A DNA stretch of 64,000 nt from Takakia lepidozioides. Taxonomy: Eukaryota > Plantae > Bryophyta. The position numbers and the translations under genes were made by a program. Positions 1,726-40,018 of this stretch are shown in pieces (the stretch's first letter is position 1; the number at the start of each line of letters is the position of its first letter). Location: contig CM060731.1 in assembly GCA_030704615.1 (NCBI GenBank), positions 76,818,001 through 76,882,000 on the forward strand, written 5' to 3'. The notes under the pieces were generated by a model. It saw only the letters and a list, made by a program, of their open reading frames with translations, searched no databases and had not been told where the DNA came from.

Positions 1726-4308
1726 TCACCAATAATCTCCACAAGAACACACTCCATTCCTGAAATGATGAAAGCGATTAGCATCCCTTGCAACAATCTC
1801 GCGTCCAACAATCTTTGAGATGAACTTGGTGGCAGTGTGGCAATCCCCACATATACGAAGGTTCTTGACTATACGGATAGGTGTCCCAGGGAGCGTGGTG
1901 ATGAGCCCAAAAGCAATGGCCAGCTTTTCACTGTGGTGGCAGAGAGCCTGTCCCTTTCGTGGCTGATCCACATCATGTATTACAAAGCGAGTGTCAGTTA
2001 CATATCCTGCCTCCTTCATTTGCCTGGTTAATGTCTCCAACTCATTGTAGATCTCCTCTGTTTGTGGGTGTGATCTATCTTTGAAAGAAAAACTATGTAT
2101 TTTGTTATTTACCTCCACCCAGCTGCACCCTGGCTCCTTTTTCACACTTCTGTTGCCCATCACTTTCCTCACTTTTGCTACAGCATCCCACCTGCCAGCA
2201 GCAGCATATATGTTTGAAAGCAGCACATACACCCCAGTATTTTCTGGTTCCACTGTAAGGATACATTCTGCGGCACGTTCTGCTAGCTCCACATTGCCGT
2301 GAATTCTGCAGGCACCAAGCAAGGCCCCCCAAACAGACATGCCTGGTTTGGATGTCTGTTTGAAAATGAAGTCTTCTGCCTCACCCAAGAATCCGGCACG
2401 GCCCAGAATGTCAACCATACAACTAAAGTGCTTCTCGACTGGTGTGAGGCCGTGATCTCGACTCATGGAATCAAAGTAATGAGTACCTTCATGGACTAGG
2501 CCCATATGGCTACATGCTGTGAGAACACCAACGAATGTGACCTCGTTTGGTTTCACCCCTTCCTGTTGCATCTGTTCAAAGAGATGGAGAGCCTCCTTCC
2601 CAAGCCCGTGCTGGGCATATCCTACAATCATTGCAGTCCATGAGATCACATCTCGCTCGGCAATTTTGTCAAACTCTTGCTGTGCATCCAACAAACTTCC
2701 ACACTTGGCATACATGTCCACAAGGGCATTCCCCACACACACATCTGCTGCAAATCCAGATCTGATAATGTGGGCATGCACCCCCTTTCCTTCTTCCAGC
2801 GCTGCCAGGCTGGCGCATGCATTGAGGATGCTGACGAAAGTGATCTGGTCAGGCTTCATGCCTTCTTTTTGCATTCGCCGAAAGAGTGCCAAAGCCTCCT
2901 CACCATGACCTTGCTGAGTAGATCCTGTGATCATTGCAGTCCATGTGACCACATCTCGTCTCGGCCTATTCTCAAATACTTGGCGAGCATCCACCATACT
3001 CCCGCATTTGCAATACATGGTGACAAGAGCATTTCCCACTCTGACATCCGACTCAAATCCACCTTTAATGATGCTTTCATGGAGCCACTTGCCCTGTTCC
3101 AGAGCTGTTGGACTGGCACATGCGCTGAGGATGCTCATGAAGGTGACCTTGTCTGGCTTTATGCCTTCTCTTTGCATTTTCTCGAAGAGTTTCAAAGCCT
3201 CTTCACCATGACCATGCTGAGCGGATCCTATGATCATCGCATTCCATGAGATGACGTCTCGCTGAGGCATTTTATCAAACACTCGGCGTGCATCCTCCAC
3301 CCTCCCATACTTGCAATACATGGTGAGAAGGGTGGTTCCCACACGGACATCTACGTCCATCCCATCGTTGATGATGGTCGCATGGATCTGCTTGCCCTGT
3401 TCCAAGGTAACTGGGCTTGCACATGCATTGAGCAGGGTTATGAAGGTGATTTCGTTTGGCTTCACGCCTTCTTGTTGCATTTGCTGAAATAGTTGAAGAG
3501 CCTCTGCACTATGACCAAAATGAGCAGATCCTCCGATCATTGCAGTCCAGGAGATCACGTTCCGTTCAGGCATTCTGAAGAACACTCGGCGCGCTTCCAC
3601 CAAATCACCGCACTTAAGATACATATTGACAAGGGCAGTCCCCACTCGGACATCTGACTCAAATCGAGCTTTGATGATGCCAGCATGGAGCTGCTTCCCC
3701 TGCTCCAGAGCTGCTGGGCTGGCACACGCGCTGAGGATGTTCATGAAGGTGATCTCAGTTGGCTCCACATCATTCGTTTGCATTTGCTGGAAGAGTTCAA
3801 ATGCCTCTGCAACGTACCCTTGCTGAGCATATCCTGAAATCATCGCATTCCAAGAGATCACATCTCGGTTACGCATTTGGTCAAATACTTGGCGCGCATC
3901 CAGCACACTCCCACACTTCACATACATGCTAACAAGGGCGTTCCCTAGGAAGATGTCTGGTTCGAATTGACTTTGCGTGAGGTGGGCATGGACCCCCTTG
4001 CCATCTGCCAGGGCCTTCATCTTAGCACACGCCCGCAGGACGGAAGCACAGGTCTCCGAATATGCTGCAAAGCCTCGTTGTTCCATCAGACCCAAAATGT
4101 CCGCTGCCTCCTTCAATCGTCCCTTCTCGCCATCCCCACTGGTATCGATATTCCCTCGCTCTGCTCTTGTTTTTCGCCTTTGTCCTCTGCTTACGGCATT
4201 GGTGGCCATGGACATGCCGAAACTAACACCGTTTCCTTGACAGTGATTCAGATTTCTGCGGCAGGAGACGTAATACTCGATAAACTTAAAAACTTCCCCC
4301 ATTCCCAT
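1726..4308 (-). CDS. PLS-class PPR protein with E and DYW (PG-type) domains, organellar C-to-U RNA editing factor; start is either the ORF ATG or MSMATN at ~4215
   Basis: 860-aa intronless ORF with P-L-S repeats, PG box PGCSWVEV, HSEKLA, CGDCH and terminal CSCGDYW. Confidence 0.96.
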   Translation of the reverse strand: MGMGEVFKFIEYYVSCRRNLNHCQGNGVSFGMSMATNAVSRGQRRKTRAERGNIDTSGDGEKGRLKEAADILGLMEQRGFAAYSETCASVLRACAKMKALADGKGVHAHLTQSQFEPDIFLGNALVSMYVKCGSVLDARQVFDQMRNRDVISWNAMISGYAQQGYVAEAFELFQQMQTNDVEPTEITFMNILSACASPAALEQGKQLHAGIIKARFESDVRVGTALVNMYLKCGDLVEARRVFFRMPERNVISWTAMIGGSAHFGHSAEALQLFQQMQQEGVKPNEITFITLLNACASPVTLEQGKQIHATIINDGMDVDVRVGTTLLTMYCKYGRVEDARRVFDKMPQRDVISWNAMIIGSAQHGHGEEALKLFEKMQREGIKPDKVTFMSILSACASPTALEQGKWLHESIIKGGFESDVRVGNALVTMYCKCGSMVDARQVFENRPRRDVVTWTAMITGSTQQGHGEEALALFRRMQKEGMKPDQITFVSILNACASLAALEEGKGVHAHIIRSGFAADVCVGNALVDMYAKCGSLLDAQQEFDKIAERDVISWTAMIVGYAQHGLGKEALHLFEQMQQEGVKPNEVTFVGVLTACSHMGLVHEGTHYFDSMSRDHGLTPVEKHFSCMVDILGRAGFLGEAEDFIFKQTSKPGMSVWGALLGACRIHGNVELAERAAECILTVEPENTGVYVLLSNIYAAAGRWDAVAKVRKVMGNRSVKKEPGCSWVEVNNKIHSFSFKDRSHPQTEEIYNELETLTRQMKEAGYVTDTRFVIHDVDQPRKGQALCHHSEKLAIAFGLITTLPGTPIRIVKNLRICGDCHTATKFISKIVGREIVARDANRFHHFRNGVCSCGDYW

Positions 4309-4574
4309 TGCAACTAACCTTCAACTATCACATCTTGAACAAGGAAAGCGGCTGCCTGTAAAGGAGTTAACGAAATAGTGTGAGCTTGCCGCTGCCCTTG
4401 GACAAAATATACCTTGCACAGTGTGTGGCTCAAAGAACTCACATGGCAAGGAAAGCCCATAGTGCACCTCCATCTCTCATTCGCCTTTGCTCTCAAAACC
4501 CATTTACACTCTGTCCTTCTGCAGACCTGCACTTCAATTTGGAACCAGACAAGGGGCGAGTAGCCATGTGCAAT

Positions 4575-4800
4575 TGAGGGTGCTGCATCGAGGTGGACAG
4601 CCAGCTTCATACATTTGTTGTAGAGGACGAATTCTCAAATTAAGGAAATCCATGCTGAGCTGACGAGATTGTCCAGGGCAGACGAGGAAGGTTGGGTATG
4701 TGCCTGACCAGCGCTTTGTATTGCATGATGTGGGGGAGACGAAGGAGCTCTGCCACCATAGTGAGAAGCTTTTGGACTCATCAGCAGGCCCCCTGGGTAT
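4575..4800 (+). pseudogene. Degenerate E+/DYW-domain relic (further copies at ~16990-17220 and ~34795-34935)
   Basis: Translates with breaks as CCIEVDSQLHTFVVED..QIKEIHAELTRLS..GYVPDQRFVLHDV..LCHHSEK..FGLISRPPG, collinear with the DYW domain of 45596-48121. Confidence 0.85.
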
Positions 4801-5011
4801 CTCAGCCCTGACAACCACTATGTACCCCTTCCTTGTTGAATGATGCGTGCCAGTGTGCGGTGATTACTCAGGCTTTTCTCTTCCTGCTTGAAATTTTATG
4901 CTGTCCGTTGCTCATCTACTACGACCACCTTTTCTTACGATTTTTTTGTACCTGGACCCTGCGGATTTAAGATATAAGATATACACGCCCAAAACGACGA
5001 CCTGGAGCCTA

Positions 5012-6187: not shown

Positions 6188-7287
6188 CTAGAGACCTCCG
6201 CTAACTACCCTGATGCCAACAGTACGTGCATTAGGTGGAAGGACATGATTGTGCTGGAATGTCCATGTGCCTTGCTTCTTGTCATACATCACAACTACTT
6301 GTGGATTTGTAGAATGTGCTACGCTGCACAAAAATATGAGATTCTCATGGCTCACCCATTTCAACTGTTGGGTGAACAAGCCCAAGAAGCTAGTTCTTGC
6401 AATCTCCAGCCACTCTGCAGTCGTTGACGAAACTTTGAACTCCCACACATGGATAGTTAAGCTAGAGAAGCGAGGAAGAGCCCCAACAAGCAAAAGGCGC
6501 CCGCCACTCTCTACAAGGAATGGGTGACCATCAATGTAACCACGTCCACTACAATCAGGCATCGGTATAGCAACTTTAGTCCACACACCGCTGCAAATGT
6601 CCCAAGCCATCAAAATGTAGTTATGCAATTGTCCATAAAATAAAACAAAGAGAGTAGGGCCACATATCACACTATCTGCACAGTACCAAACAGTACCCAG
6701 TTCTGTGGGCATCTTTCCAGTCTCAGTCCAACACTCGCAAACTAAGTCGAAGATGTGTGTTCTCCAAAGTCCCCTATCGCCGCAATACTCGCATGATATG
6801 ACAATGACCTTGTAGGTGTTGGTGCATCTATCCACAATCATATTTACTCTTTGAATGTCGAAAAGCGTTGGATTGTGAGGCAGGGCTGGCGCTTGTCTAG
6901 AACTGTTGGAGAGAGGATTGTACACAATCCATGATGGTAAGGCACTAAAGCCCTCGTCCATCATGCAAATAAGCCTCCATCTGCAGCACGAACTCTGTAC
7001 CGTGAACGGAACTTGGGAAATTTGAGACCAATCTTGTGCCACGGTCGAGTTGTGGGGGTATACAACATGTAAACATCATGTTGGCTTGAGCATGTGTCAA
7101 AAGACAAGAGATAGGAGTCTTGGTGAAGAGGGAGCTGCCGACAGAGTTGTTGGAAACCAGCAGTAGATGGGATGGAATTCCACAACTTGCAAACCGACTT
7201 ACATCTCACAAGACTTCGATATGGCGACCAGGCCAACACTACCATCACTAACTCGAAAGGGAGCATGCTCCAAATCTCCTCCTCCAT
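6188..7287 (-). pseudogene. F-box gene, copy A, with a 1-bp frameshift at ~6967 (TTTT>TTT)
   Basis: Two overlapping ORFs together match the intact paralog 50367-51494; F-box motif WSMLPFELVMVVLAW..LVRCKSVCKLW. A homopolymer sequencing error cannot be excluded. Confidence 0.85.
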
Positions 7288-8217: not shown

Positions 8218-11200
8218 CTTCTCTCTCGTTTCTCTCGCGCGCGCGCGACAGCACGTCGGCGCTCGCGCGTCGGCGCTACGCTCACGGGCGTTGGCGCGCT
8301 AGCGCCATCTCCACCACACCATGACGTCCAAACGCCAAAGGACGGCTGCCGACGAGGTAGACTACCCGTCTCTCTCACGTCGACCTGATTCCCCTCTGCT
8401 TCTTCTTCTTGCCCCTGTCTCTCATCAAGCCTCTCCTTTGCGTCAGTACTCCACAAGGAGTGCTGATGTTCAAACGCTTCGGGACCAAATCTCCATCTTA
8501 CAAACGAAATGCATATCGGAGGAAACTCTGCAGCAAGTGCTCGCTGCCCGTGACAATGACTCGGAGGAGCGGTTGGCTTCCCTAGACAAAGACTAGGAGA
8601 CGCGGATGGCTTCCCTTAACAAAAATTAGGAAAAGTGCATGGATTCCTTGGACAAAGATTGGCAGAAGCGCATGACAGACAGATACACAAACTTGGAGAA
8701 CAATATGCGAGTTCATGACAGCGTTTTGCGGGCCTCTCTTGAGGAGTGCACTAGTAAACTTCAAGGTCTGGCGAAACATCTCAATGACAAATCCACACAT
8801 ACGCGTCTTTCAAAACTTGAAGGCGAAGTGAAGACCTTCACAGAGAAGAGCCTCCCAGATCCCCTCACAGCAAGCATCCACCTACAGGTGGAATCCCTTA
8901 GCAAAGAGTTGGAAACACACAGAACTGCGACGTCTACAATGGCTCGGGAGCTCCAAGCTCACAAGGCAGAGGCCTCCTCCTTGGCTAATATAGTTAAGGG
9001 GAGCACATCCAACAACAGTCCTCACTCTCTGGAGGAGACAGTCTCGGCTACCTTGCAAGAGGAACAACAATGGGCTTTCAAAGCCCTTAACATCAGGGTC
9101 ACTAGGAAGCTAGGGGGCCTTGCTGAAGGGGACCCTCTTGACGCTGCCACCAGCCTTATTCAGCAAAACCTTGCTCTCCCACGGGGCACGAGTGGCTCTG
9201 AAAGGGCTTGGCGTGCAGGATCTTCAAAGCACAAAGTCCTCTTCATTAGATTCAAGGACAAGGATGCTCGGGATAGAGTCCTCAGGCATAGGCCTCAATT
9301 GAGAGGTCAGGGTATGTACCTCAACGATGACTTGACCCCTTTGCAATACAACGCCATGCGGGCGCAACTCTTGCAGGTTAAGCAAGCTCGAGCTCAAGGG
9401 CACTATGTCGTGTACCGAGATGGGAGGGTAATTGTCCGGGAGCACGAACGTCGCCCCTCTAGCTCTAAATAGGGGTTGGGGCACCATGAGACCAAAGCAC
9501 GCTCACATCTACACATTGGCTCATGGAACTGTAATGGCTCGTTGTGGAGCCACCCTCAAGGGCTTCTAGATATTCTTTCCAAGTGTGATGTTCTTTTTCT
9601 TTTGGAAACTCATGCGTATGAAGGAAATGACCCCCTTTTATTCTCGGATATAGCTTTCAGTTAGTGATTCGTCCACGTACAGGTCTCAAAGGATCTGGAG
9701 GTGTGGCTTGTTACTTTGCTGACTGGCTTCTCCCACTTATCTCCTTCCCATACAAAGACCCACTGGCAAGGTACATTTGGTGTCACATCAAAGGCTACAA
9801 CATCCTGCTGGCGGGATGTTATTTTGCTCCGGCCGCATCTCCGCACAGCGGCCTACATATTCGAACAGATTCATCATATGTTCCATTGGAAGACGATATG
9901 GCCCGTCTCCGTACCCCATAAACGGACATTTTCTTGGTTGGAGATTTCAACGCCCGTACAGGATCACTACAGGCCCCCACCTTCGACCACACAGATCCTC
10001 TACACATCCAACGCTCGCATACGGAATTGGAGAGGCAAAGTGCAGATTCCTCTTGCGAAATCACAATTTACGGTCACCATCTACTCAAGTTTTGTGAAAC
10101 TAAGGGGCTGTCCATTTACAATGGAACAACCAACTTCAAATCCTCCAGCCAGTTCACTTGCCACATGTACAAGGGCCAAAGCGTGGTTGACTATCTCTTG
10201 GGGAGCCCCAACAAGTCTGATAGAATAAGCTCATTTTACATCACAAGGTACCCGGATTCTGATCACTCTTGCCTTTCCTTTGCATTTCCTTCCATCTCCC
10301 TCCCCATGAGGATCCCCTCTGCGTCTCTTCCCTTACACCCACGTATCCACTTTAATACCCATTTCTCTCACTTACACGACGCCGAGTATGAAACATACCT
10401 AGCGTCAACCCTCCCTTCCATTCTACATCTATCATCTCCTAACGACAAGGCTACACATCTTACTCAAGCCCTTTGGGACTCAGCCCTGCGATCCTTTCCC
10501 GTCACCCTTCCATCTACCTCCTCACCCTTCTCCACTCGTCGTTACGCATCATTTTATGATGAGGAATGCAAGACTGCTAGACGTCGCATCAAATTTTTAC
10601 TACTTGATACCAATTCTTCTCCAGAGTCCACTAATCTTGCTCTTAAGCACTATAAGTCCCTCATTAGATCCAAAAAGCAAGCCTACACTATCAAGTTGCA
10701 ATCTTCTTTCCTTGCTAAAATCAGATTTTCTCCTCGATCTCTTTGGTCCCTCCTTAAACCTCATAGAGATCCCCCCCCAATCACTGACATTCATGTCTGG
10801 CATGAGTATGCACAGTCTTTGTACCATTCCCCAACCCAAACTCCTTCTCCTATAACTTCTAAACCCCTTCACTTCTCTCTCTTTACTACAGCCAATGTCA
10901 GTAAGGCAATCAAGAAGCTGCAAAATGGCAGAGCGGTGGACATTTCAGGACTTCAGAGTGAATTCATCAAGCGTGGTGCAACGGGGCTTTCCAACAGAGT
11001 GGACAAAGAGCATCATCCACCCACTTTTTAAGAGTGGTGACAGGCTCGCACCGACAAACTATCGTACTATCATGGTGTCCTCATTATTTGCTAAACTGTT
11101 TGGGGCAGTAGTGGCCATGGAACTGGATGATTGGGCTGAGTACTCTCGCATTCGTGCTGAGGGACAGGCTGGTTTCCGTCGAAACCGATCCACTATTGAC

Positions 11201-12890
11201 CACATCTTCACTCTTCAGGTTATGGTGGAAAGTGCACGCTATGACAAAAGAATGGTCTATGTTTGCTTCGTGGACTTTCACAAAGCCTTTGATTCAGTTC
11301 CTCGGGACCTTCTCTTCCAACGGCTCCATAGAGTGGAAGTCCCTCCAGACATCCTTTGTGCCATCTCTTCTATGTATGAGATTGTCACTGGCATGGTCAA
11401 TGTCGCTGGTGAATTCTCAGCCGAGATCCACAGCAACATTGGAGTCAAACAGGGCTGCCCCCTTTCACCTACCCTATTCGGGATCTACATTGACACCTTG
11501 GAGAATTACATATCAAAAAACCATGGGGTTGGGGTCCCATTGGATGGGGGACCAACCCAATCAGATCTCCTCTATGTTGATGATGTTGCCCTTTTGGCAC
11601 AATCCCAGGTCTTTCTGCAACGCCATCTCAAAATTTTGGAACAGTTCTGCAAAGACTATGGGATGCAGGTCAATCTTAGCAAGACCAAGATCATGGTCTT
11701 CAATGGCCAGGCTGATCGTAGATTTCAACCAGCAGGAAATTGAGATTGTGAAATCATACTGGTACCTAGGTCTGGTTATCCACTTCCCCAAGTTTCACTT
11801 TGTAGCCACTGCCTTGGACAAGTTGACTAAAGGTAAGGCGGCCTCCGTCCGCCTTCAGGCCAAATGCAAGCAAATACATCTACGGCATCCCCTGACCAAA
11901 AAGTGGCTGTTTGACACCGTCGTCAGCCCTGCTACCATCTATGGTTGTGAGTTCTGGGCACCTGGTGTCCCTGTCTCTTGGTGGGAAAAGAATTTGGAAC
12001 CATTACAGTCATCTTTTCTCCAAGCAATGCTTGGCGCCAGGAGCAGAACTCCATCTCAGATCCTAGGTGCAGAGTTCGCATGTATACCGTTGCAATCCGA
12101 GGCCCTCTTCAGGCTTACAATCTTTCTCCATAGATTGCAGGCCCTTCCACCCAAAGGGCCAGTGGCAAGGGCCCTCACAATATCTATGAGGCTCAAAGCT
12201 GCAGGTTTCAGGAACTCCTGGTATGCTCGAGTGGACAGTTTATTTCAACGTAACGGACTTTCTACTGCTTTCCTATTACCAATGAACCCAGATGAGGTGG
12301 ACATCACATCCAGACATGACCGCAACATACTCATTCGGAGAGAGCTTATGGAATTACATGTCAAGAGAATTTGGATGCTACCCAATCTCACGACAAAGCT
12401 CCACTTCTATCGAGAGACATTCTTGGTGCTCCGCGATGATAGAATCTTGAGACCAAATTGCCTTTCAGCACCCTTATCTCCTTCCCTCTTGAGGGCATTG
12501 GGGTGGTTCAGGGTGAGTTCCCACAACCTACGGATAGAGACTAGCAGATGGGAAAACCTGCAACGGGAGGACCGCCTATGTCCAGCTTGCATAGGGCGCA
12601 GCAAGGAAATTGAAACTGAAGAACACTTCTTCTTCTACTGCCCTCTATACTACGAGATCCGTGGGAGATTCCACTGTTTATTCAGTGGAACCCAAACTCT
12701 CACCGGTGTCTTTCACTATGAGGATCAAAAATGCGTGGCAGCCTACCTACACGAGGCCTTCACCCTTAGACAATCGCTAGAACATTAATTATGGTTTCTG
12801 GATTTGTTCCTCTCATGTTTTCTTCCATTTTGTCCCATAAGCTCTCCGAGCTTTCCGCGGACGTTATAAAGCACCATTTCATTTCATTTC
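8218..12890 (+). mobile_element. Near full-length non-LTR retrotransposon, RTEX/RTE-like LINE (family 1), degenerate
   Basis: CpG-rich 5' UTR; ORF1 8321-9472 (coiled coil plus RRM-like IRFKD..YLNDDLT); ORF2 ~9476-12788 with APE (SWNCNG, VGDFNAR, SVVDY, SDH), RT (FVDFHKAFDSV, GVKQGCPLSP, YVDD) and C-terminal FRVSSHNL..CPAC..EEHFFFYC; (CATTT)3 tail; stops and frameshifts. Confidence 0.93.
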
Positions 12891-13152
12891 TCTTGTTTTT
12901 CGGCTCTGCCCTCAACTGCATGCGGTATCCCGCGCCTCAGCTACTGCGGTAACCGGTGGCCTCTCGCCGGTTTTCGGACATAACAGGCTGTTTTAAGGAT
13001 CGAAATGACTGGCCATATCCAGTCGTTGGAACGACCTTCCAGTCATTTTGTGGTACTTGCTACTAGCACGAGTTACGACGACGTTATTACTTTACTGTCA
13101 TTTGCAGAGATTGTTCTTCGCACTCTTTGTTACCGCGATTGAGGTCACAGCT

Positions 13153-15980
13153 ATGGTGCGGCGACGCGCTAAGCGTCAAACTGGTTGTGAAGCGCCCACG
13201 TTTGATCTCATTGTTGAGCCGACTCCGCCATCAAAAGAACAACGGACAATCGTTTTTTCAAAGAAGAAGCGGAGTAAGAGTCGTGTGTAATGCGTCGGTG
13301 AACCATCACGACCTGTGCAATCATCAAATGTCGATGCAGATGCAAATTGTGTACCAAAACCAGATTCTGTTGCGCTTGAACCAGATTCTGTGTTGATCGA
13401 TTCATCCTGGATTGCACATGATCCGGAGGTTCTTTTAGTGCCTGATCCATCTGTTGTTGCTGGAAAATTGGCAGATCCAGTAGACTTTATCAATGCAGAT
13501 GGCAACGTACCTGTACCTCTACCTAGGACTGATGTTCCTAGTTCTATTGGTCTCGCGGATTCTTCAAGTTCTGGGTAGTTCTGAGGATAGGGATCCTAAA
13601 GTTGAAGAGTTCATTCTAATTGATCCAAGTACTATTCCTGGGTATTTTGAAATACCTGAAGCGGCTGGAGTTGGAGATCTCTTCACCGATAGTCGTCCTC
13701 AGATCGATGACGATAACACTGAGCAAGATGTCAATGCAGAGCCACGTGAGCCTATCCCTAGTGTAAATTTTCTTCCTATTACTGAAGAAGATTACAACAG
13801 GATTGTGAACGATCTTAAGCGTCCTAGCGCTAAGAATGAGTCATGGGCCGTGAATAAGTTCAATGTGAGGAGAGCTTTCATGAAACTGGATTGCTCTGTC
13901 AAGATTGAAGACTTGCCTCTTCAAGAATTTGGAAAACTTCTTTCTCGGTTTTTCCTGATGTTGTGTAAGGGCAGTTCTGTTCGCTATCCAACTGCGAGTA
14001 TAATGACTATGTACCATTCTTTTAACCGTCTTCTCAAGTCTGCTCGTGAACATCGGATAATTCGAACAGGTGTTGTTGAGCCAGTTTTGTATGAGAAAAC
14101 ATCCTTATTTTGTGGCAACAAACAAGGCACTGATGGAGGCTATGAAGTTGTCCCGCAATGCTGGTGCTAACAAAGGAAGGCGGAAAGTAGACGGGATAAC
14201 TTGGGATGAAGAGCAAATGATTTTGTCGCATGAGCTGCACCAACTTAGTTACCACTGCTATGCCAGATGCGATTTGCTTACTATTGTTTTGTCGTCTTTC
14301 TGATTCGGGCAATATGAAGCTTTACAAGTTGCTTATTAATGACTTCACAATTGGAACTGACGAGGAAGGCCGAGCTTATCTGAAGTAAGATGAATTTATT
14401 TGTTGGTTTTTTTGTCAATGCTATTGTTGTTCTTCATAGCGGTATCTAATTACTTCGTCTTTTTGGCAGGTATGATGAGCGACTGTCCAAGAAATGTCGT
14501 GTCACTGAAAAGATTTTAAGATGAGCATTTCCGCCCTGCTGTTATCTTTCACGATGCAGATCTTCTACATACTTGGCATAGTATGATGTCTCATATGCCT
14601 GAGGGCTGTCAGGACGGCCATCTTTTCCTGTCAATTAAGCACAATACACGTGATGACGTCTGGTACAAGAAAGTTAACTGCGGAGAAGGATTTATGCGTA
14701 ACTGGATGCGGAATATGACAAAGAACTGTGAAATCAAAGTCGACATCACAAATCGCTCGGGAAGGGTTACCAATATTACTCGTATGGCAGCTGCCAATGT
14801 GCCTCCAGCAATCATGTCATTGCTTACTGGCCATCACAATACGAAGCCACTTGAGCGATATGACAGAACCAGAGAACTGAAGGCTAGGGCTGCGCAGGCT
14901 GTTCTTCGTGCTCCATACAATGAGAGTATAGGGGTACCTTGATGAACAGTTCAACTCGACACTTGGTAGCTGGCATTCCAAAGAGAATGGGAGTAAATTT
15001 CCTCTGGCAGATGTCACAAACCGCGTGTAAGGAGTTATTGCAGAGTGTTCGAACTTGAATCAGGCTGAGAATTCTAATTCTGGAATTGCTGTATCTAGTG
15101 ACACTGTCGGTTTCGTTCATTTCCATCATTCTCATCCTGTGAATCATGAGTTACCTATCAAAGGTCAGGTGCGTTCTGATTTCCCTAGTATGGCATCTCA
15201 TGTACAGCCTCAAAATAATGTGGTCTTACCTATCAGAGGTCAGGCTCGTCTTGAATTCCCTATGGCATCTCATGTACAGCCTCAAAATAATGTTAGACCA
15301 TATTTTCAACCACAGCCAGCTACTAAGTGTCGTCCTCTTGCTTCGTATCATCCAATTCGCCCCCACCTATTTTGCATGGGGGGGCTCTGAATTCTAATGT
15401 TCAGCTACGATCTAGTGGATATCACCATCCTTGGGCTCCGACGCACAGAAGTTTAGGGTCAGGGCATAGGTTGCCTGAGCGAGTTGAGAAGGGCAACCAA
15501 GCATCTCCATGCTTACATCTGGATAGTCGTACTTGGAAAACAGAAGCCAACGAGAAGGTGATTTTGTTTCAAAATGATATTGAGGCTTCTGAAAGCTTTG
15601 ATTGGAATTCAACTGATGATGATACCAGTTACACTCCGGTTATTGAGGCTAGTTCTATCCAATCTGGTCTTGGCATTGGTGGAAAGCCTAATATGGTGGA
15701 GCCAATTTTGAGTACTGCAGTTGTTCATGATGGGGATTCTATCTCGGTGATTCCAGCTGTGAATTCATTAGTTCCAATTGCAACGCAGTGTTCTTCTACC
15801 CTAGTACCAGTCGTTACAGCATCAGCTCCAATTGTTATATCCCGTCCGGCATCAGATCCATGTTCCATGATTCCAGGAGCTAGTTATGGACCAAATTTTC
15901 ATGTACCAACTGCATTTGCTACTTTCCATTTCCATTTTAGCAATGCAGGTCAGACGAGGCAATATTTTCGTGATAATTAG
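13153..15980 (+). pseudogene. Degenerate tyrosine recombinase gene (DUF3504/Crypton type; core ~13770-14930; intron 14385-14469)
   Basis: Reconstructed across frameshifts: LLSRFFLMLCK..RYPTASI..F.ATNKAL..ITWDEE..QMRFAYYCFVVFLIRG..LYKL..DF.IGTDEEGRAYLK|YDERLSKK..LFL..VWYKKVNCG..ITNRSGRVT.ITRM..LTGHHN..LERY. Confidence 0.85.
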
Positions 15981-16194
15981 ATTAAAGATTCTATAGTGAT
16001 TTTGTACATGCTATGGATTACAGTGTAAGATTACAATTGATTCCTCTGGAATTTGACCAGGGATATATACTAATGACATATGTTAATTGACATAAAATAC
16101 ATTTTTAGAGGTTGGTGTGCCAAGCTTGTGACACCTCTTCCCAATTTTCAAATGAATATGTAATGTTTCAATCTTCAGAATTCATTCCTACGGA

Positions 16195-16503
16195 TTTTAC
16201 GCTTCATCCAAGTGTAGCAAGGTTACCGATTTTACATCCGGAGATAGAGGGGTTATCGCTTTGTACCAACCAATCGAAGCATATAATATCAACAGATCTT
16301 AATTATGTTGTTTTACGCTTCATCCAAGTGTAGCAAGGTTACCGATTTTACATCCGGAGGTAGAGGGGTTATCGCTTTGTACCAACCTACAATATCAACA
16401 GATCTTAATTATGTTGTTTTACGCTTCATCCAAGTGTAGCAAGGTTACCGATTTTACGTCCGGAGATAGAGGGGTTATCGATTTGTACCAACCAATCAAA
16501 GCC
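16195..16503. repeat. Subterminal tandem repeat of the recombinase element (116-bp and 106-bp units, ~2.7 copies)
   Basis: ttttacgcttcatccaagtgtagcaaggttaccg starts at 16195, 16311 and 16417. Confidence 0.95.
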
Positions 16504-18084
16504 CGTTTTTCTACCTTGTCAGTAATGTGGTCACGGATTACCCTATGTATCCAGTGTGCTCTGATCCAATGGAAGAGAGCCACGTCATCGAGATGCTTCA
16601 AACAGCCAGTTATGGCATTGGTGGCCATGGACATGCCGAAATGAAACTAACACCGTTTTCTGCGGCAGGAGACATAATACTCGATGGACTTAAAAACTTC
16701 CGCGATTCTCATTGGAACTAACCTTCAACTATCACATCTTGAACAAGGAGAGCGGCAGGCTGTAAAGGAGTTATCGAAATAGTGTGAGCTTCCAGCTGCC
16801 CTTGGACAAAATATACCTTGCACAGTGTGTGGCTCAAAGAACTCATATGGCAAGGAAAGCAATTCCCATAGTGCACCTCCATCTCTCTCATTCGCCTTTG
16901 TTCTCAAAACCCATTTACACTCTGTCCTTCTGCAGACCTGCACTTCAATTTGGAACCAGACAAGGGGCGAGTAGCCATGTGCAATTGAGGGTGCTGCATC
17001 GAGGTGGACAGCCAGCTTCATACATTTGTTGTAGAGGATGAATTGCATCCTCAAATTAAGGAAATCCATGCTGAGTCGACGAGATTGTCCAGGCAGACGA
17101 GGAAGGTTGGGTATGTGCCTGACCAGCGCTTTGTCTTGCTCGATGTGGAGGAGACGAAGGAGGTTTCTCTGCCACCATAGTGAGAAGCATTTGGACTCAT
17201 CAGCAGGCCACCTGGGTATCTCAGCCCTGACAACCCAGCCATTATGTACCCCTTCATTGTTGAATGATGCGTGCCAGTGTGCGGTGACTAGTCAGGCTTT
17301 TCTCTTCATGCTTGAAAACCTATGCTCTCAGTTGCTCATCTACTACGACCACCTATTCTTATGATGTTTTTGTATCTGGACCCTACAAATTTCAGATATA
17401 AGATATACCCGCCCAAATCGATGACCTGGAGCCTAGACGCACTAAGATCTGGTAGCATTCAGGTATTTCAAACTGCAAAGCAAGCTGTCTGTCTTCTGTG
17501 TCGACCTAAGGGCCTGCGGTCTGCCACAAGACTAAAAAAAGCAAGATTGCAAGAGCTAGGGCAACCCGGACAATGGTGGAGATACGAAAGGAAGAGGCCA
17601 AAGTGTAGTGCTGAAGTAACATCCAAACACTTTTGTAAGCCTTTTCATGGAAAGCATGCACCTCCGCCATGGGGGTGTCTACTCCAATGCCTTGAGTGCA
17701 TGATTAGTTGTTTGTGTTGGCCAGGCTTGAATAGATGTTGCTTCAAGAATTTGAGTTACACATCTTCTTTGCCGCAGTGAAGGCCTAAGCATGATCACAC
17801 ACACATGATAGACCAAAAATGTAGCAAGTAAAAAGTGGACGGCAGAACAAGGGAGATAGCAATGGTACTACATATAATATCTCTATGGTTTCCCTTAGTT
17901 ATGCCGGCTTTGGCTGGAGTCTTTCTCTCTCTCTCTCTCTCCATGCTTCACGTGAAGAGCTAATAAGACAATGTCCTCAAAGGATCCCAACTTGGGAACA
18001 AAACATATCCATGACATCAGGGAGGATGGTATCAAGTGTTGGACAGTATGACTAAACAAGATGTAGTTTCATAGAATGATGCTA

Positions 18085-20163: not shown

Positions 20164-23100
20164 TGTCGCGGCCCTTTGCCTTGAGGGCAGGGGGTCGGGA
20201 CACATGAGGGGCTGCCCCTGTGGTGGGGGCAGCGGCAGCGATAGGTATGGGGGGCTGAAGCACCCTTGAGTGCCCAAGGCACTCAAGGAGGCGGAGGCGC
20301 TCACTAGGTGGAGCCCCGCACACCGGGTTGCGGTGGGGGTGGCTCCACAAGGGGTGGTGGTAGCTTAGCGGGACTTAGTGGGGGTGGCATAGGACTCACC
20401 ATGGGGGCGGAGACCTCGTGGTGGGAGGCGTGGGGAGTCTTGGGACTCATCACGGTCCATAGGGATCGTGGTGAGTGGGCCAAGACTCACCGCGACTCAT
20501 CACCGGGAGTCGAGGGTTTTCGTGGTGGTTCGCCATAAAATGGCATGGTTGGTTGTGAAACCCCCGCGGACAGCTACAGAAGTATATATAACGGGAGTAG
20601 TGACCCCGAGAACGGTGCAAGCCTGTTGGTGACCAAAAACTAGTGAGTAAGCGAGCGAGCCGGAAAGCGACCAAAGAGTGGGGAGCTGTTCCAGACTGCC
20701 ATCTACTAAAGGGAATTCCACTAGGCCCAAATAGGTGGAGGGTTTAGTGGGAGAGGGAAGGGGGACCGTTATGTCCCGGTGAGCAGCCGAAGCTCCAAGT
20801 TGGCCCGGCGGCCAGGTTGGGAGTCAGGCGCGCGCATCAAAGCGAGTAACTATGACTTGAAGGGGAGCTTACCGAAGTGAGGTGCACGACACTTGGTATC
20901 AGAGCTTAGAGTTCAGTACGTGATCGTCCTTGGGATTGGCCTCATCATGGGGTCGGGCAAGCCAAAGCGAAAGCGGAACGGCCCAAAAGATGATGATCCT
21001 GGTGAGCCCGATGGGGGCGACGTGTCACCGAAGCGGCCGTTTGAGGAAGCGACGCAGGTTTCTGAGAACGAGGCCGCTCAAGAGCGGTAGGAATCCGAGG
21101 AGTTGGAGCCCGAGGAATCCCTGAGAGCTCCGACAGACCAACAGATGCCTCCCATGCCGGCAGCTTTTTGGAAAGGGTTGTTGGCGCAGTTTGGCGGGAC
21201 GTTGAAATACGTGTTGAAGGCGGCTAATGCCACTTCCGCTAAGGCAAAGTTTAAGGTGAAGCCTAAGGAACCCGGCACCTTCGAGGGCGTCCAAAATCAG
21301 AAGGCACTCAACACCTGGCTCTTGGAGCTAGAGCAGTACTTCCGGGCGGCCAAGTTGAGTGACGAGGATCGGGTGGAAGTGGCTCCCACCTATTTGAGGG
21401 GCTATGCTCAACAATGGTGGCAGAAACGCCTTCACGACCGAGGTCCAAGCCCGGAAACCTTGAACTGGAGTGGGTTCAAGGAATTGATGAAGAGACAGTT
21501 TGTGCCCCTCAATGCGTCCTGGCTTGCCCGGGACAAGATGAGGAATTTGAAGCAAATAGACGACATTCGGGGATATGTCCAGGCTTTCAATGTGCTTTTG
21601 CTCGAAGTCGCGGACATGGCAGAACCGGAAATGGTCTTCAACTTTGTGGCGGGACTGGCCCCATGGGCCAGGCGGAAGTTGGAGGAGAAGCCACCTAAGA
21701 CTTTGAACGAGGCAATTGAGAGGGCTGAATGTTTCTCAGATGTCCCTAGGGGTGAAAGACAAGGTCGTACGGAGTTGAACCACAAGAAGACTCGGCGGGA
21801 AGGTGACTCCTTCCGACCGGAAAAGAAGTGGGATAGGCCACGCGGCGACAATGGCACGTGGAAATCAAAGGGAGGGCCTTCACACATCAAGGCGGCACCC
21901 GGTGCTTCGAAAGGAAAAGTGGGTGGAGCGGCCTATGGCGGACAGAAGGCGATCTTTGATGGAGTGTGTTTCAATTGCGGAGAGCCCGGGCACATGGCCA
22001 AGAAGTGCACGAAACCCCGACAATTGAACATGACTCGGGCAACCACGGAGTTGTCGGAAGATACCATCAGTCGCTTGGTAGAAGCGGTGGTCGCCAGAAC
22101 TTGCAAGGTAGGCAAATATTCTTGTGAGTTGTATCAGGAAACTGGCGCATTGCGTAAAGGGAGTCACTTATTGTTCGTGGATGGGATAATATCCGGAACT
22201 AACGTGTCATTGTTGGTGGACACAGGAGCGTCGCACTCCTTCATGACACCGGCAACGGCACAAAAGCTGGGACTCCCGACAACTGACGTAGGGGCCTCTA
22301 TTGAGGTGCGTTCTGCCAAAGGAGAACCGCAATTGGCGACGAGGTTGGCGTTCGATGTTCCTCTTCAACTGGGGAGTTGGGAGGGACGTGAAAACTTCAC
22401 TGTCTGCGAGATCGATGGAGTGGATCTCATTTTGGGGATGACCTTTTTGAGCAGATCCGGAGTGGTCATAGATGGCCGCAAGAGGGTAGTCACGTTGCCA
22501 TGTTGGAATGGTGGCGAGGTCTTACGAGTTTCGGAAACGCCCAAACTCCTGGGAGGGCGAATAAACCTTATGTCAGCAAGGGAGTGGGCCGTGGAGGAGG
22601 CACACGAGCCCCAATTTTTGCTCTACATTAGAGAAGTGAAGGGAGAAGGCGATGGAGAGCCGAGCCCAGATTGGATCAAGGGGATTTTGGAGAAATACCA
22701 TGATGTGATGCCGGAGGATTTGCCAAGCGGCTTGCCACCGCGAAGAGGAGTTGACCACAAGATTGAGGTGATACCGGGATCGGAACCGCCTGCCAAGGCG
22801 CCCTACCGGTTGAGCCACAGAGAGTTGGTCGAGCTGAAGACTCAGCTCAAGGATCTAATGTGAAAGGGGTACATCCGGCCGAGTAAGTCACCTTACGGAG
22901 CCCCGGTGCTATTTGCAGACAAGAAGGATGGGACGCTGCGGATGTGTGTCGATTACAGGGCTTTGAATAAGGTGACTATAAAAAACCGGTACCCTTTGCC
23001 AAGGATCGACGACCTCTTCGATCGATTGGCAGGAGCGAAGTATTTCAGCCGGATCGACTTGCGCTCCGGCTATCATCAAATTCGGGTGGCGGAAGGAGAT

Positions 23101-26100
23101 GAGGAGAAGACCGCGTGCAGGACAAGGTATGGTTCATATGAGTTCTTGGTGATGCCTTTTGGGCTCACCAATGCACCAGCGACATTTAGCACGCTGATGA
23201 ACAGCCTTTCCCAGGAGTGGTTGGATGACTTTGTGATCGTGTACATCGACGACATCTTGGTGTATTCGAAAACAAAGAGAGCACCTGGAGCACCTCAAAG
23301 GGTGTTTCAGAAATTGCGGGAAGGGAAGCTGTATGCCAAAGCTTCAAAGTGCGAATTCGGGGTCACAAAAGTGGAGTTCCTGGGGCATGTGATTACACAG
23401 GATGGGATCAGAATGGATGACAGGAAGGTGAGGGCAATTTTGGACTGGGAGCCTCCGACTTCGGTCCCGGGAGTGCGATCCTTCCTAGGACTCGCCTCCT
23501 ATTACCGGAAGTATGTGAGAAATTTCGCCAAAATCACGGGGCCGCTGTCAGACCTTCTGTGTAAATCTAAAGTTTGGGCATGGAACACCTTTTGTGGCCA
23601 AGCTTTTGCTGAATTGAAGCAGCGGATGGCGGAAGCTCCAGTCTTGAAAATCCCGGAGTTCGATCGTCCGTTCGAGATACATACAGATGCGTCGGACTTC
23701 GCGATTGGGGGTGTACTGATGCAAGATGGACGTCCAGTGGCTTACGAAAGTAAAAAACTGAATGAAGTGGAGCGACGGTGGCCGACGCACGAGAAAGAGA
23801 TGAAGGCGGTGGTGCACTATCTTGAGCTTTGGCGCCACTATGTTGGTTCCAACCCAGTGAAGGTGTTCACGGACAATGTCACGGTGAAGTATTTTGCCAC
23901 GCAGCCCAAGTTGTCCCCAAAACAACTTAGGTGGCAAGATATTTGGCGGTGTTCGACGTGGATATCCAGTACAAACCGGGACGAGACAACGTGGTGGCCG
24001 ATGCTTTAAGTAGAAAGCAGCAGCTCTTGTTGGTGTACAAGGGCGAGACGACACTCCAAAGGAAGATCCGGAAGGCTTGCCGGAAGGATGAGCTGGCGAA
24101 GTCCGTGATGCAGGACTTGAGGATGGGGGTTAAATCGCAGTTCCACTTGCAAAATGGACTGCTCCGGTATAAGCAAAAGCGTCTCTACGTGCCGAAGGGA
24201 GGGATCAGAGATAGCCTCTTGAGAGAATGCCATGATAGCCCGCTTGCGGGCCACGGCAGAGCCAAGCGCACTGCGACACTCTTAAAGAAAGAGTATTTCT
24301 GGCCCAAACTGAAGGAGGAGGCAGAGGAGTATGTCAAGACATGCACCACATGCCAACAAAACCGGAGCGAGTACAAAAAGCAAGCGGGGCTGTTACAACC
24401 CTTGCCGATTCCAGAGGGGACTTGGGAAAGCGTCTCGATGGATTTCATGACTGCTATGCCGCTGTCAAAAGAATTCGATGCAATCATGGTGGTGGTGGAT
24501 AGGTTCAGTAAAATGGGTCATTTCATTCCCACCAAGGAGACGGCAACGGTGCAGGAAACAGGGCGACTTTACTTCGCCCACGTCTTAAAAATCATGGAGT
24601 CCCGAAGGATATTGTCTCGGACCGCGATCCAAAGTTTACGAGTAAATTTTGGAGGGCACTTTGGAAGAAGATGGGGATGAGGCTGAAGATGAGCACCGCC
24701 TTCCGACCTACGACCGACGGCCAAACAGAAAGAGTGAATTCCGAAGTGAAGCAAATCTTGCGGAATTACGTGTCGGCAGACCAAACAGACTGGGTGGAAC
24801 ACTTAGACGCGGCAGAGTTCTGTTATAATAACACAGAACACTCCGCAACGGGAGTTTCCCCTTTCGTATTGATCTATGGAAAAGCACCTCTGGTGCCGAC
24901 AAGTTGGGCCGCCCATGACGTTGAGGAACCGGCAGTAGCGGCGGTACTGGAAGAACGCGAGCGTTTGTTGAAGCTCGCAAAGTACAACATTGCCAAAGCT
25001 AGGAAACGGTATGAAAGGCAGGCGAATCGGAAGCGGAGGGAAGTGAAGTTTGAGGCAGGCACAGAGGTCTGGTTGAACATCAAGAATTTCCGACTACCTC
25101 CGGAAATGAGTCCGAAGTTCGTACCTCCGTATGCGGGACCCTTTCGCATTCGGAAGGTTATGAATGAGGATGTGTATGAATTGGAGCTGCCGGCAAACAG
25201 CAAGGTGCACCCAGTATTCCATGTCTCCCTTTTGAAGCCTTACTTCAAAGATGAAGCGTGTCCGAATCGGCATCAAGTGTTGCGTCCGCCACCTATGCTG
25301 TTGGATCATGAAAATGAACCTGAGTACGAGGTGGAGGCAATATTTAAGTCGAGGAGGTTCATGAACCGAGAAACGGAGTATCTCGTCAAATGGAAAGGCT
25401 ATCATCATGTGGAGGCATCTTGGGTGCGTGCCTCAGAAATGGGAAACGCATCCGAGGCGGTTGCAGCTTTCGAAGGGCGACCTCAAAAGCGGAAGAAGCG
25501 TTGATGGGGACATCAACCTTGGAGCGTGGGGAGGAAATGCATGCTTAGCCGGCTTAGCTAGCTTAGGAATCCGATTGCAAAAACTTGTATTGTACAAAAC
25601 GTGCTATAAGTGAAATGGCTTCCAAATGTTGTGCGTCCTATTTTGTTTGGAATGGTGATGCATGGTATGGTTGGCTAGTGTGTAGAATGCATGCTAGCTT
25701 ATAAAAGTGGGAGAGGTAAATTGGGTTAATCGTGTGTTTGCGTAGTGCCGAAATCGGGTGACCCCCATCCAAGGGGCAAAGAAACTTGCGCCTTCTTTGG
25801 GAGTTCACGTGCTAGTGCGCACCTGGCGCGTGCACGTACTATAACTGCGCTACCGAGGGGGTTGCCTTGTAGTGCGGGCTAACGCGGAAGCTACGTGCTT
25901 CCGTTCACGTACTATAATCGTGTAGCCTCGGGACGAAGTCGTAGTGCGGCTTCGGCGTGTTCCCGTACCTCAGGCCAGCATTCCAAGGCGACCCAATTGT
26001 AGTGATTGGGGCGCACAGTTGGTTCAAGGTTATCTTCCTAGTCAAAGAGGGTTCCAGTGAACCCTTGCTCAAGGTGATGCCAAAAGCGGCATCATGAGCG

Positions 26101-38033: not shown

Positions 38034-38137
38034 GTACTCATAAGACGTTTACCTTGTGGCCACTGACCCCACGCCCAGTTTGGGTGGAACATGAAATGAA
38101 ATGAAATGGTACTTTATAGACATGGAACATGGGAAGA
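38034..38137 (-). mobile_element. Short 3'-end relic of LINE family 2 carrying a ~30-bp family-1 tail insertion
   Basis: Similar to 52050-52120; tggaacatg duplicated at 38085-93 and 38123-31 around (GAAAT)n-ggtactttata. Confidence 0.7.
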
Positions 38138-40018
38138 GAAATGAAATGAAATGGTGCTTTATAACGTCCGCGGAAAGCTCGTAGAGCTTATGGGACAAAA
38201 TGGAAGAAAACATGAGAGAGGAACAAATCCAGAAACCACAATTAATGTTCTAGCGATTGTCTAAGGGTGAAGGCCTCGTGTAGGTAGGCTGCCAAGCATT
38301 TTTGATCCTCATAGTGAAAGACATCAGTGAGAGTTTGGGTTCCACTGAATAAACAGTGGAATCTCCCACGGATCTCGTAGTATAGAGGGCAGTAGAAGAA
38401 GAAGTGTTCTTCAGTTTCAATTTCCTTGCTGCGCCCTATGCAAGCTGGACATAGGCGGTCCTCCCGTTGCAGGTTTTACCATCTGCCAGTCTCTATCCGT
38501 AGGTTGTGGGAACCCACCCTGAACCGCCCCAATGCCCTCAAGAGGGAAGGAGATAAGGGTGCTGAAAGGTAATTTGGTCTCAAGATTCTATCATCGCGGA
38601 GCACCAAGAATGTCTCTCGATAGAAGTGGAGCTTTGTCATGAGATTGGGTAGCATCCAAGTTCTCTTGACATGTAATTCCATAAGCTCTCTCCGAATGAG
38701 TCTGTTGCGGTCATGTCTGGATGTGATGTCCACCTCATCTGGGTTCATTGGTAATAGGAAAGCAGTAGAAAGTCCGTTACGTTGAAATAAACTGTCCACT
38801 CGAGCATACCAGGAGTTCCTGAAACCTGCAGCTTTGAGCCTCATAGATGTTGTGAGGGCCCTAGCCACTAGCCCTTTGGGTGGAAGGGCCTGCAATCTAT
38901 GGAGAAAGATTGTAAGCCTGAAGAGGGCCTCGGATTGCAATGGTACACATGCGAACTCTGCACCTAGGATCTGAGATGGAGTTGTGCTCCTGGCGCCAAG
39001 CATTGCTTGGAGAAAAGATGACTGTAATGGTTCCAAATTCTTTCCCACCAGGAGACAGGGACACCAGGTGCCCAGAACTCACAACCATAGATGGTAGCAG
39101 GGCTGACGACGGTGTCAAACAGCCACTTTTTGGTCGGGGGATGCCGCAGATGTATTTGCTTGCATTTGGCCTGAAGGCGGACGGAGGCCGCCTTACCTTT
39201 AGTCAACCTGTCCAAGGCAGTGGCTGCAAAGTGAAACTTGGGGGAGTGGATAACCAGACCTAGGTACCGGTATGATTTCACAATCTCAATTTCCTGCTGG
39301 TTGAAGATGAATCTACGATCAGCCTGGCCATTGAAGACCATGATCTTGGTCTTGCTAAGATTGACCTGCATCCCATAGTCTTTGCAGAACTGTTCCAAAA
39401 TTTTGAGATGGTGTTGCAGAAAGACCGGGGATTGTGCCAAAAGGGCAACATCATCAGCATAGAGGAGATCTGATTGGGTTGGTCCCCCATCCAATGGGAC
39501 CCCAACCCCATGGTTTTTTGATATGTAATTCTCCAAGGCGTCAATGTAGATCCCGAACAGGGTAGGTGAAAGGGGGCAGCCCTGTTTGACTCCAATGTTG
39601 CTGTGGATCTCGGCTGAGAATTCACCAGCGACGTTGACCATGCCAGTGACAATCTCATACATAGAAGAGATGGCACAAAGGATGTCTGGAGGGACTTCCA
39701 CTCTATGGAGCCGTTGGAAGAGAAGGTCCCGAGGAACTGAATCAAAGGCTTTGTGAAAGTCCACGAAGCAAACATAGACCATTCTTTTGTCATAGCGTGC
39801 ACTTTCCACCATAACTTGAAGAGTGAAGATGTGGTCAATAGTGGATCGGTTTCGACGGAAACCAGCCTGTCCCTCAGCACGAATGCGAGAGTGCTCAGCC
39901 CAATCATCCAGTTCCATGGCCACTACTGCCCCAAACAGTTTAGCAAGTAATGAGGACACCATGATAGTACGATAGTTTGTCGGTGCGAGCCTGTCACCAC
40001 TCTTAAAAAGTGGGTGGC
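38138..40018 (-). mobile_element. 5'-truncated RTEX-like LINE (family 1), RT through tail
   Basis: Near-identical inverted copy of ~11018-12890; RT YADD; (CATTT)n tail. Confidence 0.95.

Follow-up and report, generated by a model that had tools for sequence, protein, structure and literature searches.

A decayed Crypton-type tyrosine-recombinase element with terminal inverted repeats and TA flanks in Takakia lepidozioides, and its relatives in other land plants

Published accounts of Cryptons cover fungi, animals, oomycetes and diatoms and describe the elements as free of terminal inverted repeats (TIRs). Their ends carry direct repeats of 4-6 bp and no TIRs (PMC3212892). The CryptonA/DUF3504 elements of animals, with which the fungal Glomhoppers are included, are DNA transposons of a few kilobases that encode only a tyrosine recombinase (YR), as does the element reported here (PMC3212892; PMC13465315). 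A 2022 review of land-plant transposable elements (TEs) makes no mention of Crypton, and DIRS elements, the other YR-encoding TEs, are reported there so far only from green algae. The present analysis concerns a 64,000-nucleotide (nt) stretch of the Takakia lepidozioides genome (contig CM060731.1, positions 76,818,001 to 76,882,000; hereafter the window), in which an original prediction made from the sequence alone had placed a Crypton-like transposon with TIRs and a TA on both sides. That prediction had named no well-characterised land-plant example, and no characterised land-plant Crypton family was found in the literature searched, with Repbase outside that search.

The element occupies window positions 12983-16610 and is 3628 bp long; the TA on each side is read directly from the sequence. 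The left end opens with ACAGGCTGTTT and the right end, when reverse-complemented, with ACTGGCTGTTT. The ends match at 21 of 27 positions without a gap (binomial P ~6e-8 at fixed register) and at 26 of 32 with one gap, and they reach a local score of 17, whereas 500 shuffles averaged 6.9 and never exceeded 13 (z 7.2). The TIRs are real and far beyond chance, and the coordinates, end sequences and TA dinucleotides were recovered exactly as originally given. The inner 10 nt of the left TIR (AAATGACTGG) recur in inverted orientation at 13040-13049, no more than chance would give, and the repeat search found no long direct terminal repeats in the element. The recombinase gene begins 170 nt from the left TIR, and only 630 nt, which consist of repeats, come after it.

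The element sits eight codons into a pseudogene of the pentatricopeptide repeat (PPR) type. Removal of the element together with one TA leaves ...GGACATATGGC..., the minus strand of which reads MSMATNAICPKTGERPPVTAVAEARDTACS*GQSRKTR with one internal stop, and the target TA belongs to a CATATG near the 5' end of the coding sequence of the PPR gene copy. The palindromic target and the in-frame PPR N-terminus had both been predicted and were confirmed by translation. At the corresponding place a paralogue within the window (~4190-4220) reads MSMATNAVSRGQRRKTR..., and the same frame there opens an intact PPR-E-DYW open reading frame (ORF) of 860 amino acids (aa). Identity between the right flank (16611-17410) and 4192-4984 amounts to 89.6%, and homology to the paralogue, which has a single TA, starts at the right TA (TTACGGCATT vs TTATGGCATT). 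The right boundary is corroborated because paralogue homology begins at that TA. To the left of the element, 12895-12916 align with the paralogue, and 12917-12982 form a 66-nt in-frame stretch that is absent from the paralogue and adjoins the element. We read this difference as an ordinary indel between paralogues. Because the indel adjoins the site, only the TIR, the reading frame and the TA support the left boundary. The claim that the ends are fixed to the base is thus upheld by the paralogue at the right end, but the left end is set by the TIR, TA and frame. The paralogue lacks the element, and arrival after the PPR duplication, or loss from the other copy, is therefore supported; the original prediction had chosen the former, which agrees with the paralogue, but loss would fit as well.

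An intron-containing tyrosine recombinase gene is the only recognisable gene of the element, as had been proposed. The Pfam scan of every ORF of at least about 60 aa on both strands of the element identified no DDE transposase, reverse transcriptase or other family, and the scan and the repeat search together gave no sign of long terminal repeats. The pieces of the recombinase are colinear with full-length relatives through the N-terminal domain (SWAVNKF..., YPTASIM...), the R-G box, S-K-K, N-R-S-G-R, T-G-H and Y, and the relatives show no conservation of the 5' and 3' protein extensions. The residues listed in the original prediction are where it had put them, in shifted frames: the R codon at 14306-14308, SKK after the intron, RSGR at 14754-14765, H at 14832 and Y at 14859. 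The gene is interrupted by an in-frame TAA (13288-13290) and by frameshifts near 13567-13576, 14082, ~14250, 14308 and 14517-14520, with a stop after 14939. The window copy, with its stops and at least five frameshifts, is dead. All protein searches used uninterrupted pieces of the recombinase.

A phmmer search of 1.84 billion representatives with the 140-codon piece 14520-14939 returned 314 proteins at E<1e-3, of which the best are 52-54% identical. The window ORF pieces had no meaningful match in Pfam, PF00589 and DUF3504 included. Among the relatives, 11 of 24 match PF00589 (Phage_integrase) at E<0.01, the best at 6e-8, and P0003 scores 29.0 bits at a cutoff of 27.1. For DUF3504 (PF12012) the best plant relative reaches 25.2 bits against a gathering threshold of 29.7 (E 2e-5, model positions 3-160 of 162); no plant relative tested attains that threshold, and three of 24 match at E<0.01. 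Alignment by hhalign of the plant profile (A2) with a profile of animal DUF3504 and integrase proteins (A3) gave 99.94% (E 2.3e-37) over 282 columns. DUF3504 proteins from cnidarians and molluscs are among the matches of the 140-aa window piece, with E between 1e-6 and 1e-5. All ten of the weaker phmmer matches tested carry DUF3504 (nine above threshold), most carry Phage_integrase and four a QRICH1 domain, and the nearest ESM-Atlas clusters are DUF3504/QRICH1 proteins of molluscs and cnidarians. A length-windowed word-index search for homologues of the 140-aa piece gave no match, a method ill-suited to a pseudogene fragment.

The fold comparison was made on a relative, P0015, which is colinear with the window pieces; the window copy is broken. 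An AlphaFold2 model of P0015 residues 170-545 (pLDDT 87, pTM 0.73) was compared with solved structures by Foldseek. The top 28 matches were Cre complexes (Cre-loxP), aligned over both domains and ~350 columns with E down to 8e-8 and TM 0.56-0.68. Below Cre came Tn1549 Int, the integron integrase IntI and Xer, and QRICH1 ranked lower still. Sequence searches of the PDB with the window piece and the family profile found no recombinase; only the fold comparison matched. The original assignment to a DUF3504-type recombinase is carried by the profile-profile result of 99.9% and by the DUF3504 domains of distant matches, but not by the Pfam DUF3504 threshold; likewise, the profile check that had been proposed gave no Pfam match for the window pieces, and PF00589 matches in 11 of 24 relatives. 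Identification of the predicted gene product as a Cre-like tyrosine recombinase of the CryptonA/DUF3504 lineage, in a land-plant branch, is supported.

The named relatives are from the fern Adiantum capillus-veneris, the moss Ceratodon purpureus and the liverwort Riccia sorocarpa, and all are annotated as hypothetical proteins. The plant relatives carry the motifs R-G-G-x-E, S-K-N, N-K-S-x-R, G-H and Y, in which N, R and H are invariant and K and Y nearly so. Like CryptonA proteins, they have a two-domain recombinase with the motif order WA..F helix, R-G-x-x-E, S/T-K, T-N-x-S-x-R, T-G-H, Y. They differ from CryptonA in their land-plant hosts and in the residue that replaces the first histidine of H-x-x-R: the plant motif T-N-K-[STC]-x-R ... 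T-G-H ... Y stands against the animal T-N-H-x-x-R ... G-H ... Y. This lysine (arginine in the window copy) is found in the aligned plant-type relatives and is nearly invariant in alignment A2, and is also seen in A4. The K-x-x-R arrangement recalls type IB topoisomerases, such as that of vaccinia (K220-x-x-R223), rather than classical integrases. A tree built from the catalytic part places the 17 plant-type rows in one group, weakly supported (77/82), apart from the animal DUF3504 rows. The window copy falls in a subclade with P0001, P0002, P0003, P0005, P0007 and P0013 (support 92/88); the Riccia row, on a long branch, is uncertainly placed. The evidence shows that a coherent multi-copy clade of Crypton-type elements exists in non-seed land plants. 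One Adiantum capillus-veneris protein of 790 aa (P0062, KAI5068402.1) has PPR repeats at 109-165 and a recombinase C-terminal region at 534-658. The annotation has probably read through a Crypton-type insertion within or next to a PPR gene, which would parallel the situation in the window.

Two related families with defined ends, both from other plants, were available for comparison: P0156 (loci L003-L011) and P0001 (loci L001 and L042). They belong to the same recombinase clade as the window element, with catalytic-part identities to it of 31-54%, measure 3.6-4.8 kb and likewise code only for a YR; no DDE match is recorded for their called genes. The P0001 family shares the intron position of the window gene: tblastx segments against L001 break at the codon where the window intron lies, and a gap of 222 nt separates them in L001. 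P0156 copies have no intron. P0156 copies occur in at least three flanking contexts in the contigs and have common ends ~3.65 kb apart, and two 92%-identical P0001 copies in one assembly share 4.7-4.8 kb. The P0152 loci (L012-L018) and the P0007 loci (L043-L051) each proved to be one locus in many samples and yielded no ends. Because the P0156 and P0001 families, in which no second enzyme is recognisable, occupy several genomic contexts, it is suggested that the recombinase suffices for mobility in this clade.

The ends of these two families are of another type. In every context seen, both start with TTATG (TGACG in one copy) and end with TTACG, and in having short direct repeats at their ends they, but not the window element, resemble CryptonA. 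The boundary pentamers differ between the two sides, with T at the left end and C at the right, and independent insertions all show this asymmetry. No TIR was detected in either family (z 0-1.6), and there is no TA. In both, the sequence across the junction of the joined right and left ends is repeated in inverted orientation inside the element, at a distance of 70-160 nt from the left end (84-157 and 68-140 of the element), with scores of 86 and 59 against shuffle maxima of ~30. Such an internal complementary junction copy is the layout of DIRS, and it is present in both related families but not in the window element, where the best score is 21 against a shuffle maximum of 27. The terminal 100 nt of the window element show no similarity above shuffles to the relatives' termini. 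Because both related families analysed are without TIR or TA, TIR and TA ends do not characterise the clade as a whole and are peculiar to the window family. In the window element, each ~106-nt unit of the tandem repeats contains TTATGTTGTTTTACG, which is reminiscent of the relatives' boundary pentamers and may be chance. The TTATG at the right junction and the TTACG at the paralogue site also resemble these pentamers, but this correspondence was dropped because the left junction does not fit.

In contigs assembled from DNA runs of the source organism, the depth of the element interior is ~3x that of single-copy contigs. Some 2-3 other genomic copies are indicated, and contigs of ~92% identity are present. 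One copy is without 15788-16528 and retains the last 80 nt; that is, deletion derivatives keep the right end. The number of ~106-nt units varies between copies, as seen from the joints 16118>16282 and 16337>16529. The latter joint is found in X6 as well, a run guessed to be RNA; nothing else hints at transcription. Other copies have the termini too, at an abundance not much above that of the interior. Because the termini are not markedly commoner than the interior, there is no family of miniature inverted-repeat transposable elements (MITEs) with the window ends at >=80% identity. The family is therefore small and old. In contigs from other copies, 10 nt are missing at 13567 and 2 extra nt follow 14082, and both differences would restore a continuous frame. 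Less decayed copies probably exist, since these differences keep the frame continuous. No end-to-end circle joint was among the joints listed from the assembled contigs. An exact search of JGI metagenome contigs with the 19-nt TIR core gave 23 matches, none of which extended or had a partner or related gene, and these were set aside as chance. The window element is a mobile one: it has several copies, and the insertion is absent from the paralogous site.

How the element moved is less certain. With a modest lean in its favour, we consider the locus to be a dead copy of a low-copy transposon whose own YR would excise it as a circle, with the joined TIRs as a lox-like site, and would integrate it at TA. 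Intact copies would supply the family recombinase for excision. In the circle, the abutting TIRs would form a site with inverted arms of ~12 bp (CTTCAAACAGCC / GGCTGTTTTAAG) around an 8-bp spacer, AGTTAACA; the spacer would owe its asymmetry to the single TIR mismatch, at position 3. The circle would then recombine with a TA-centred target. The second site of the relatives would be their internal inverted junction copy; here the palindromic junction itself would serve. In its inverted arms around an asymmetric 8-bp spacer, the predicted joined-end site is like lox, and Cre-loxP and the Tn1549 integrase, which acts through a circular intermediate, are the best structural matches of the predicted family model. 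The likeness to these systems ends with the absence of any sequence-level match to solved structures and with a target that shares only TA with the putative spacer. A fuller version of this proposal is more probably wrong than right and is offered tentatively. It holds that the window subfamily may have exchanged asymmetric ends and a junction copy for TIRs, with a single lox-like site, integration at TA by the YR alone and a K-x-x-R active site in place of H-x-x-R; such an element, driven by its recombinase, would imitate the end signature of Tc1/mariner.

Several observations weigh against movement by the recombinase. The switch from element to host falls exactly at a 2-bp TA on both sides, which is the outcome of DDE cut-and-paste transposition. 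Known YRs exchange strands 6-8 bp apart, and the whole spacer would be expected at both junctions; the whole 8-bp spacer is not copied at both junctions. The two related families have neither TIR nor TA. The left boundary is without independent support. At the conserved K of K-x-x-R the window copy has R, and all aligned plant-type relatives have K. In the assembled contigs, no other copy's ends, true empty allele or circle junction was seen. Finally, the only described Crypton with TIR and TA, MarCry-1_FO of Fusarium oxysporum, owes them to a mariner DDE transposase (PMC3212892). The original proposal of a recombinase-mobilised family with TIR and TA ends is accordingly retained in part: the YR-only, transposon-like insertion stands, but use of these ends by the YR does not follow, given the relatives' ends and the MarCry-1_FO precedent.

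It is somewhat unlikely, but to be taken seriously, that the window element is instead a MarCry-like composite. In that case the TIRs and TA would derive from a Tc1/mariner-type (IS630-like) element, the YR gene would be cargo or nested, and a DDE transposase would move the whole in trans. Tc1/mariner elements are recognised by just such TIRs with an exact TA on either side, related YR families are without it, and a 2-bp crossover would be unlike known YRs. The precedent is close, in that MarCry-1_FO has a Crypton-type recombinase gene between TIRs with TA flanks, and its 16-bp TIRs and TA duplications are attributed to the mariner transposase (PMC3212892). MarCry-1_FO is a CryptonF that encodes the mariner DDE enzyme, whereas the window element is without DDE and its recombinase is CryptonA-like. 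No DDE remnant is present in any ORF of the element, and neither the space before the gene nor the repeats after it leave room for one. Ten long window ORFs were scanned and none is a Tc1/mariner transposase. A composite is also at odds with the absence of a MITE-like excess of termini and of nested Crypton-type boundaries or an internal junction copy inside the TIRs.

It is improbable that the left boundary has been misplaced. The insertion would then start at ~12917 and take in the 66 nt, the left 'TIR' would be subterminal, and the TA and CATATG would be coincidental. Such an arrangement would explain why the paralogue is without 12917-12982 as well as the element, and the related families do carry an inverted right-end copy 70-150 nt inside the left end. 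Against this, 66 is divisible by three and the PPR frame runs on through the stretch, which occurs nowhere else in the window; neither a hairpin nor self-complementarity was seen in it, nor the inverted left-end copy that the relatives' layout would call for. The TIRs moreover abut TA symmetrically at both ends. That the locus is a non-mobile, decayed host gene of domesticated-recombinase origin, with an inverted repeat around it by coincidence, is very improbable, as the element interrupts a PPR frame that is intact in the paralogue, the TIR match is far beyond chance, the termini are present in several diverged copies and the relatives have catalytic residues of the active type.

The coordinates of the features are collected in Table 1. 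Two intact PPR-E-DYW ORFs are present in the window: 1726-4308 (minus strand, 860 aa), which is the paralogue without the insertion, and 45557-48121 (plus strand, 854 aa). The 3' tail of a long interspersed nuclear element (LINE) at 12384-12894 has a summed contig depth of 2-5 x 10^5, compared with ~30 for single-copy sequence, with hundreds of loose ends at 12890-12894, and recurs at 38134-38646 (minus strand, 97%). The neighbourhood also contains Ty3/gypsy ORFs for gag, protease, reverse transcriptase and RNaseH, LINE ORFs with RVT_1, and two F-box/Kelch-type ORFs.

Table 1. Positions of the element, its insertion site, related copies and neighbouring ORFs (window coordinates unless a locus is named)
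Feature	Position	Strand	Remark
Left flanking TA	12981-12982	.	With 16611-16612, putative 2-bp duplication or crossover dinucleotide
Left TIR, 31 nt	12983-13013	+	Pairs with 16579-16610
Right TIR, 32 nt	16579-16610	-	Paralogue homology resumes directly past it
Right flanking TA	16611-16612	.	Paralogue has a single TA here (TTACGG, 4190-4195)
Broken tyrosine-recombinase gene	13154-15980	+	Colinear with plant relatives over ~400 aa
N-terminal core-binding-type domain	~13745-14300	+	The gene also has a basic N-terminus
Recombinase catalytic domain	~14255-14940	+	Low-complexity C-terminal extension 14940-15980
Intron, 85 nt, GTAAG...CAG, phase 2	14385-14469	+	Between ...AYLK and YDERLSKK
Catalytic motifs	14751-14861	+	NRSGR 14751-14765, TGH 14826-14834, Y 14859-14861; aligned with plant and animal motifs
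Three tandem repeats, ~106 nt each	16166-16493	+	Repeat search; 3' non-coding part of element
First codons of interrupted PPR pseudogene	16613-16634	-	ATG 16634-16632; 28/28 identical to paralogue 4195-4222
Remaining PPR N-terminal remnant	12895-12980	-	Truncated by LINE 3' end at ~12894
Unoccupied homologous site	4190-4222	-	In intact PPR-DYW paralogue, ORF 1726-4308 minus
P0156-family copies	L006:1064-4711; L008:865-4511; L003 up to 3550		Shared ends
P0001-family copies	L001:3441-8111; L042:5481-10302		Shared ends
Internal inverted junction copy	L006:1147-1220; L001:3508-3580 (also L042)		DIRS-like internal complementary region in a DNA transposon
Neighbourhood ORFs	21103-25504; 8639-12788; 38964-40139; 6188-7042 and 50367-51494		Ty3/gypsy, LINE, F-box/Kelch-type

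The window element differs from CryptonA in its TIRs of 31 and 32 nt and in having TA alone in common between its ends. It differs from the P0156 and P0001 families, with their TTATG...TTACG ends, lack of TIRs and internal junction copy, in having TIRs and TA and no such copy. What the present analysis adds is, in the window copy, the TIR and TA type of end together with an intact paralogue that lacks the insertion and, in two families of other species, the junction-copy layout. If the recombinase uses the TIR and TA ends, YR elements would have a novel means of marking their ends, and TE annotators would be cautioned that 'TIR + TA' need not imply a DDE transposase. If a DDE element moves the window family, it would represent a second, independent association of Mariner and Crypton.

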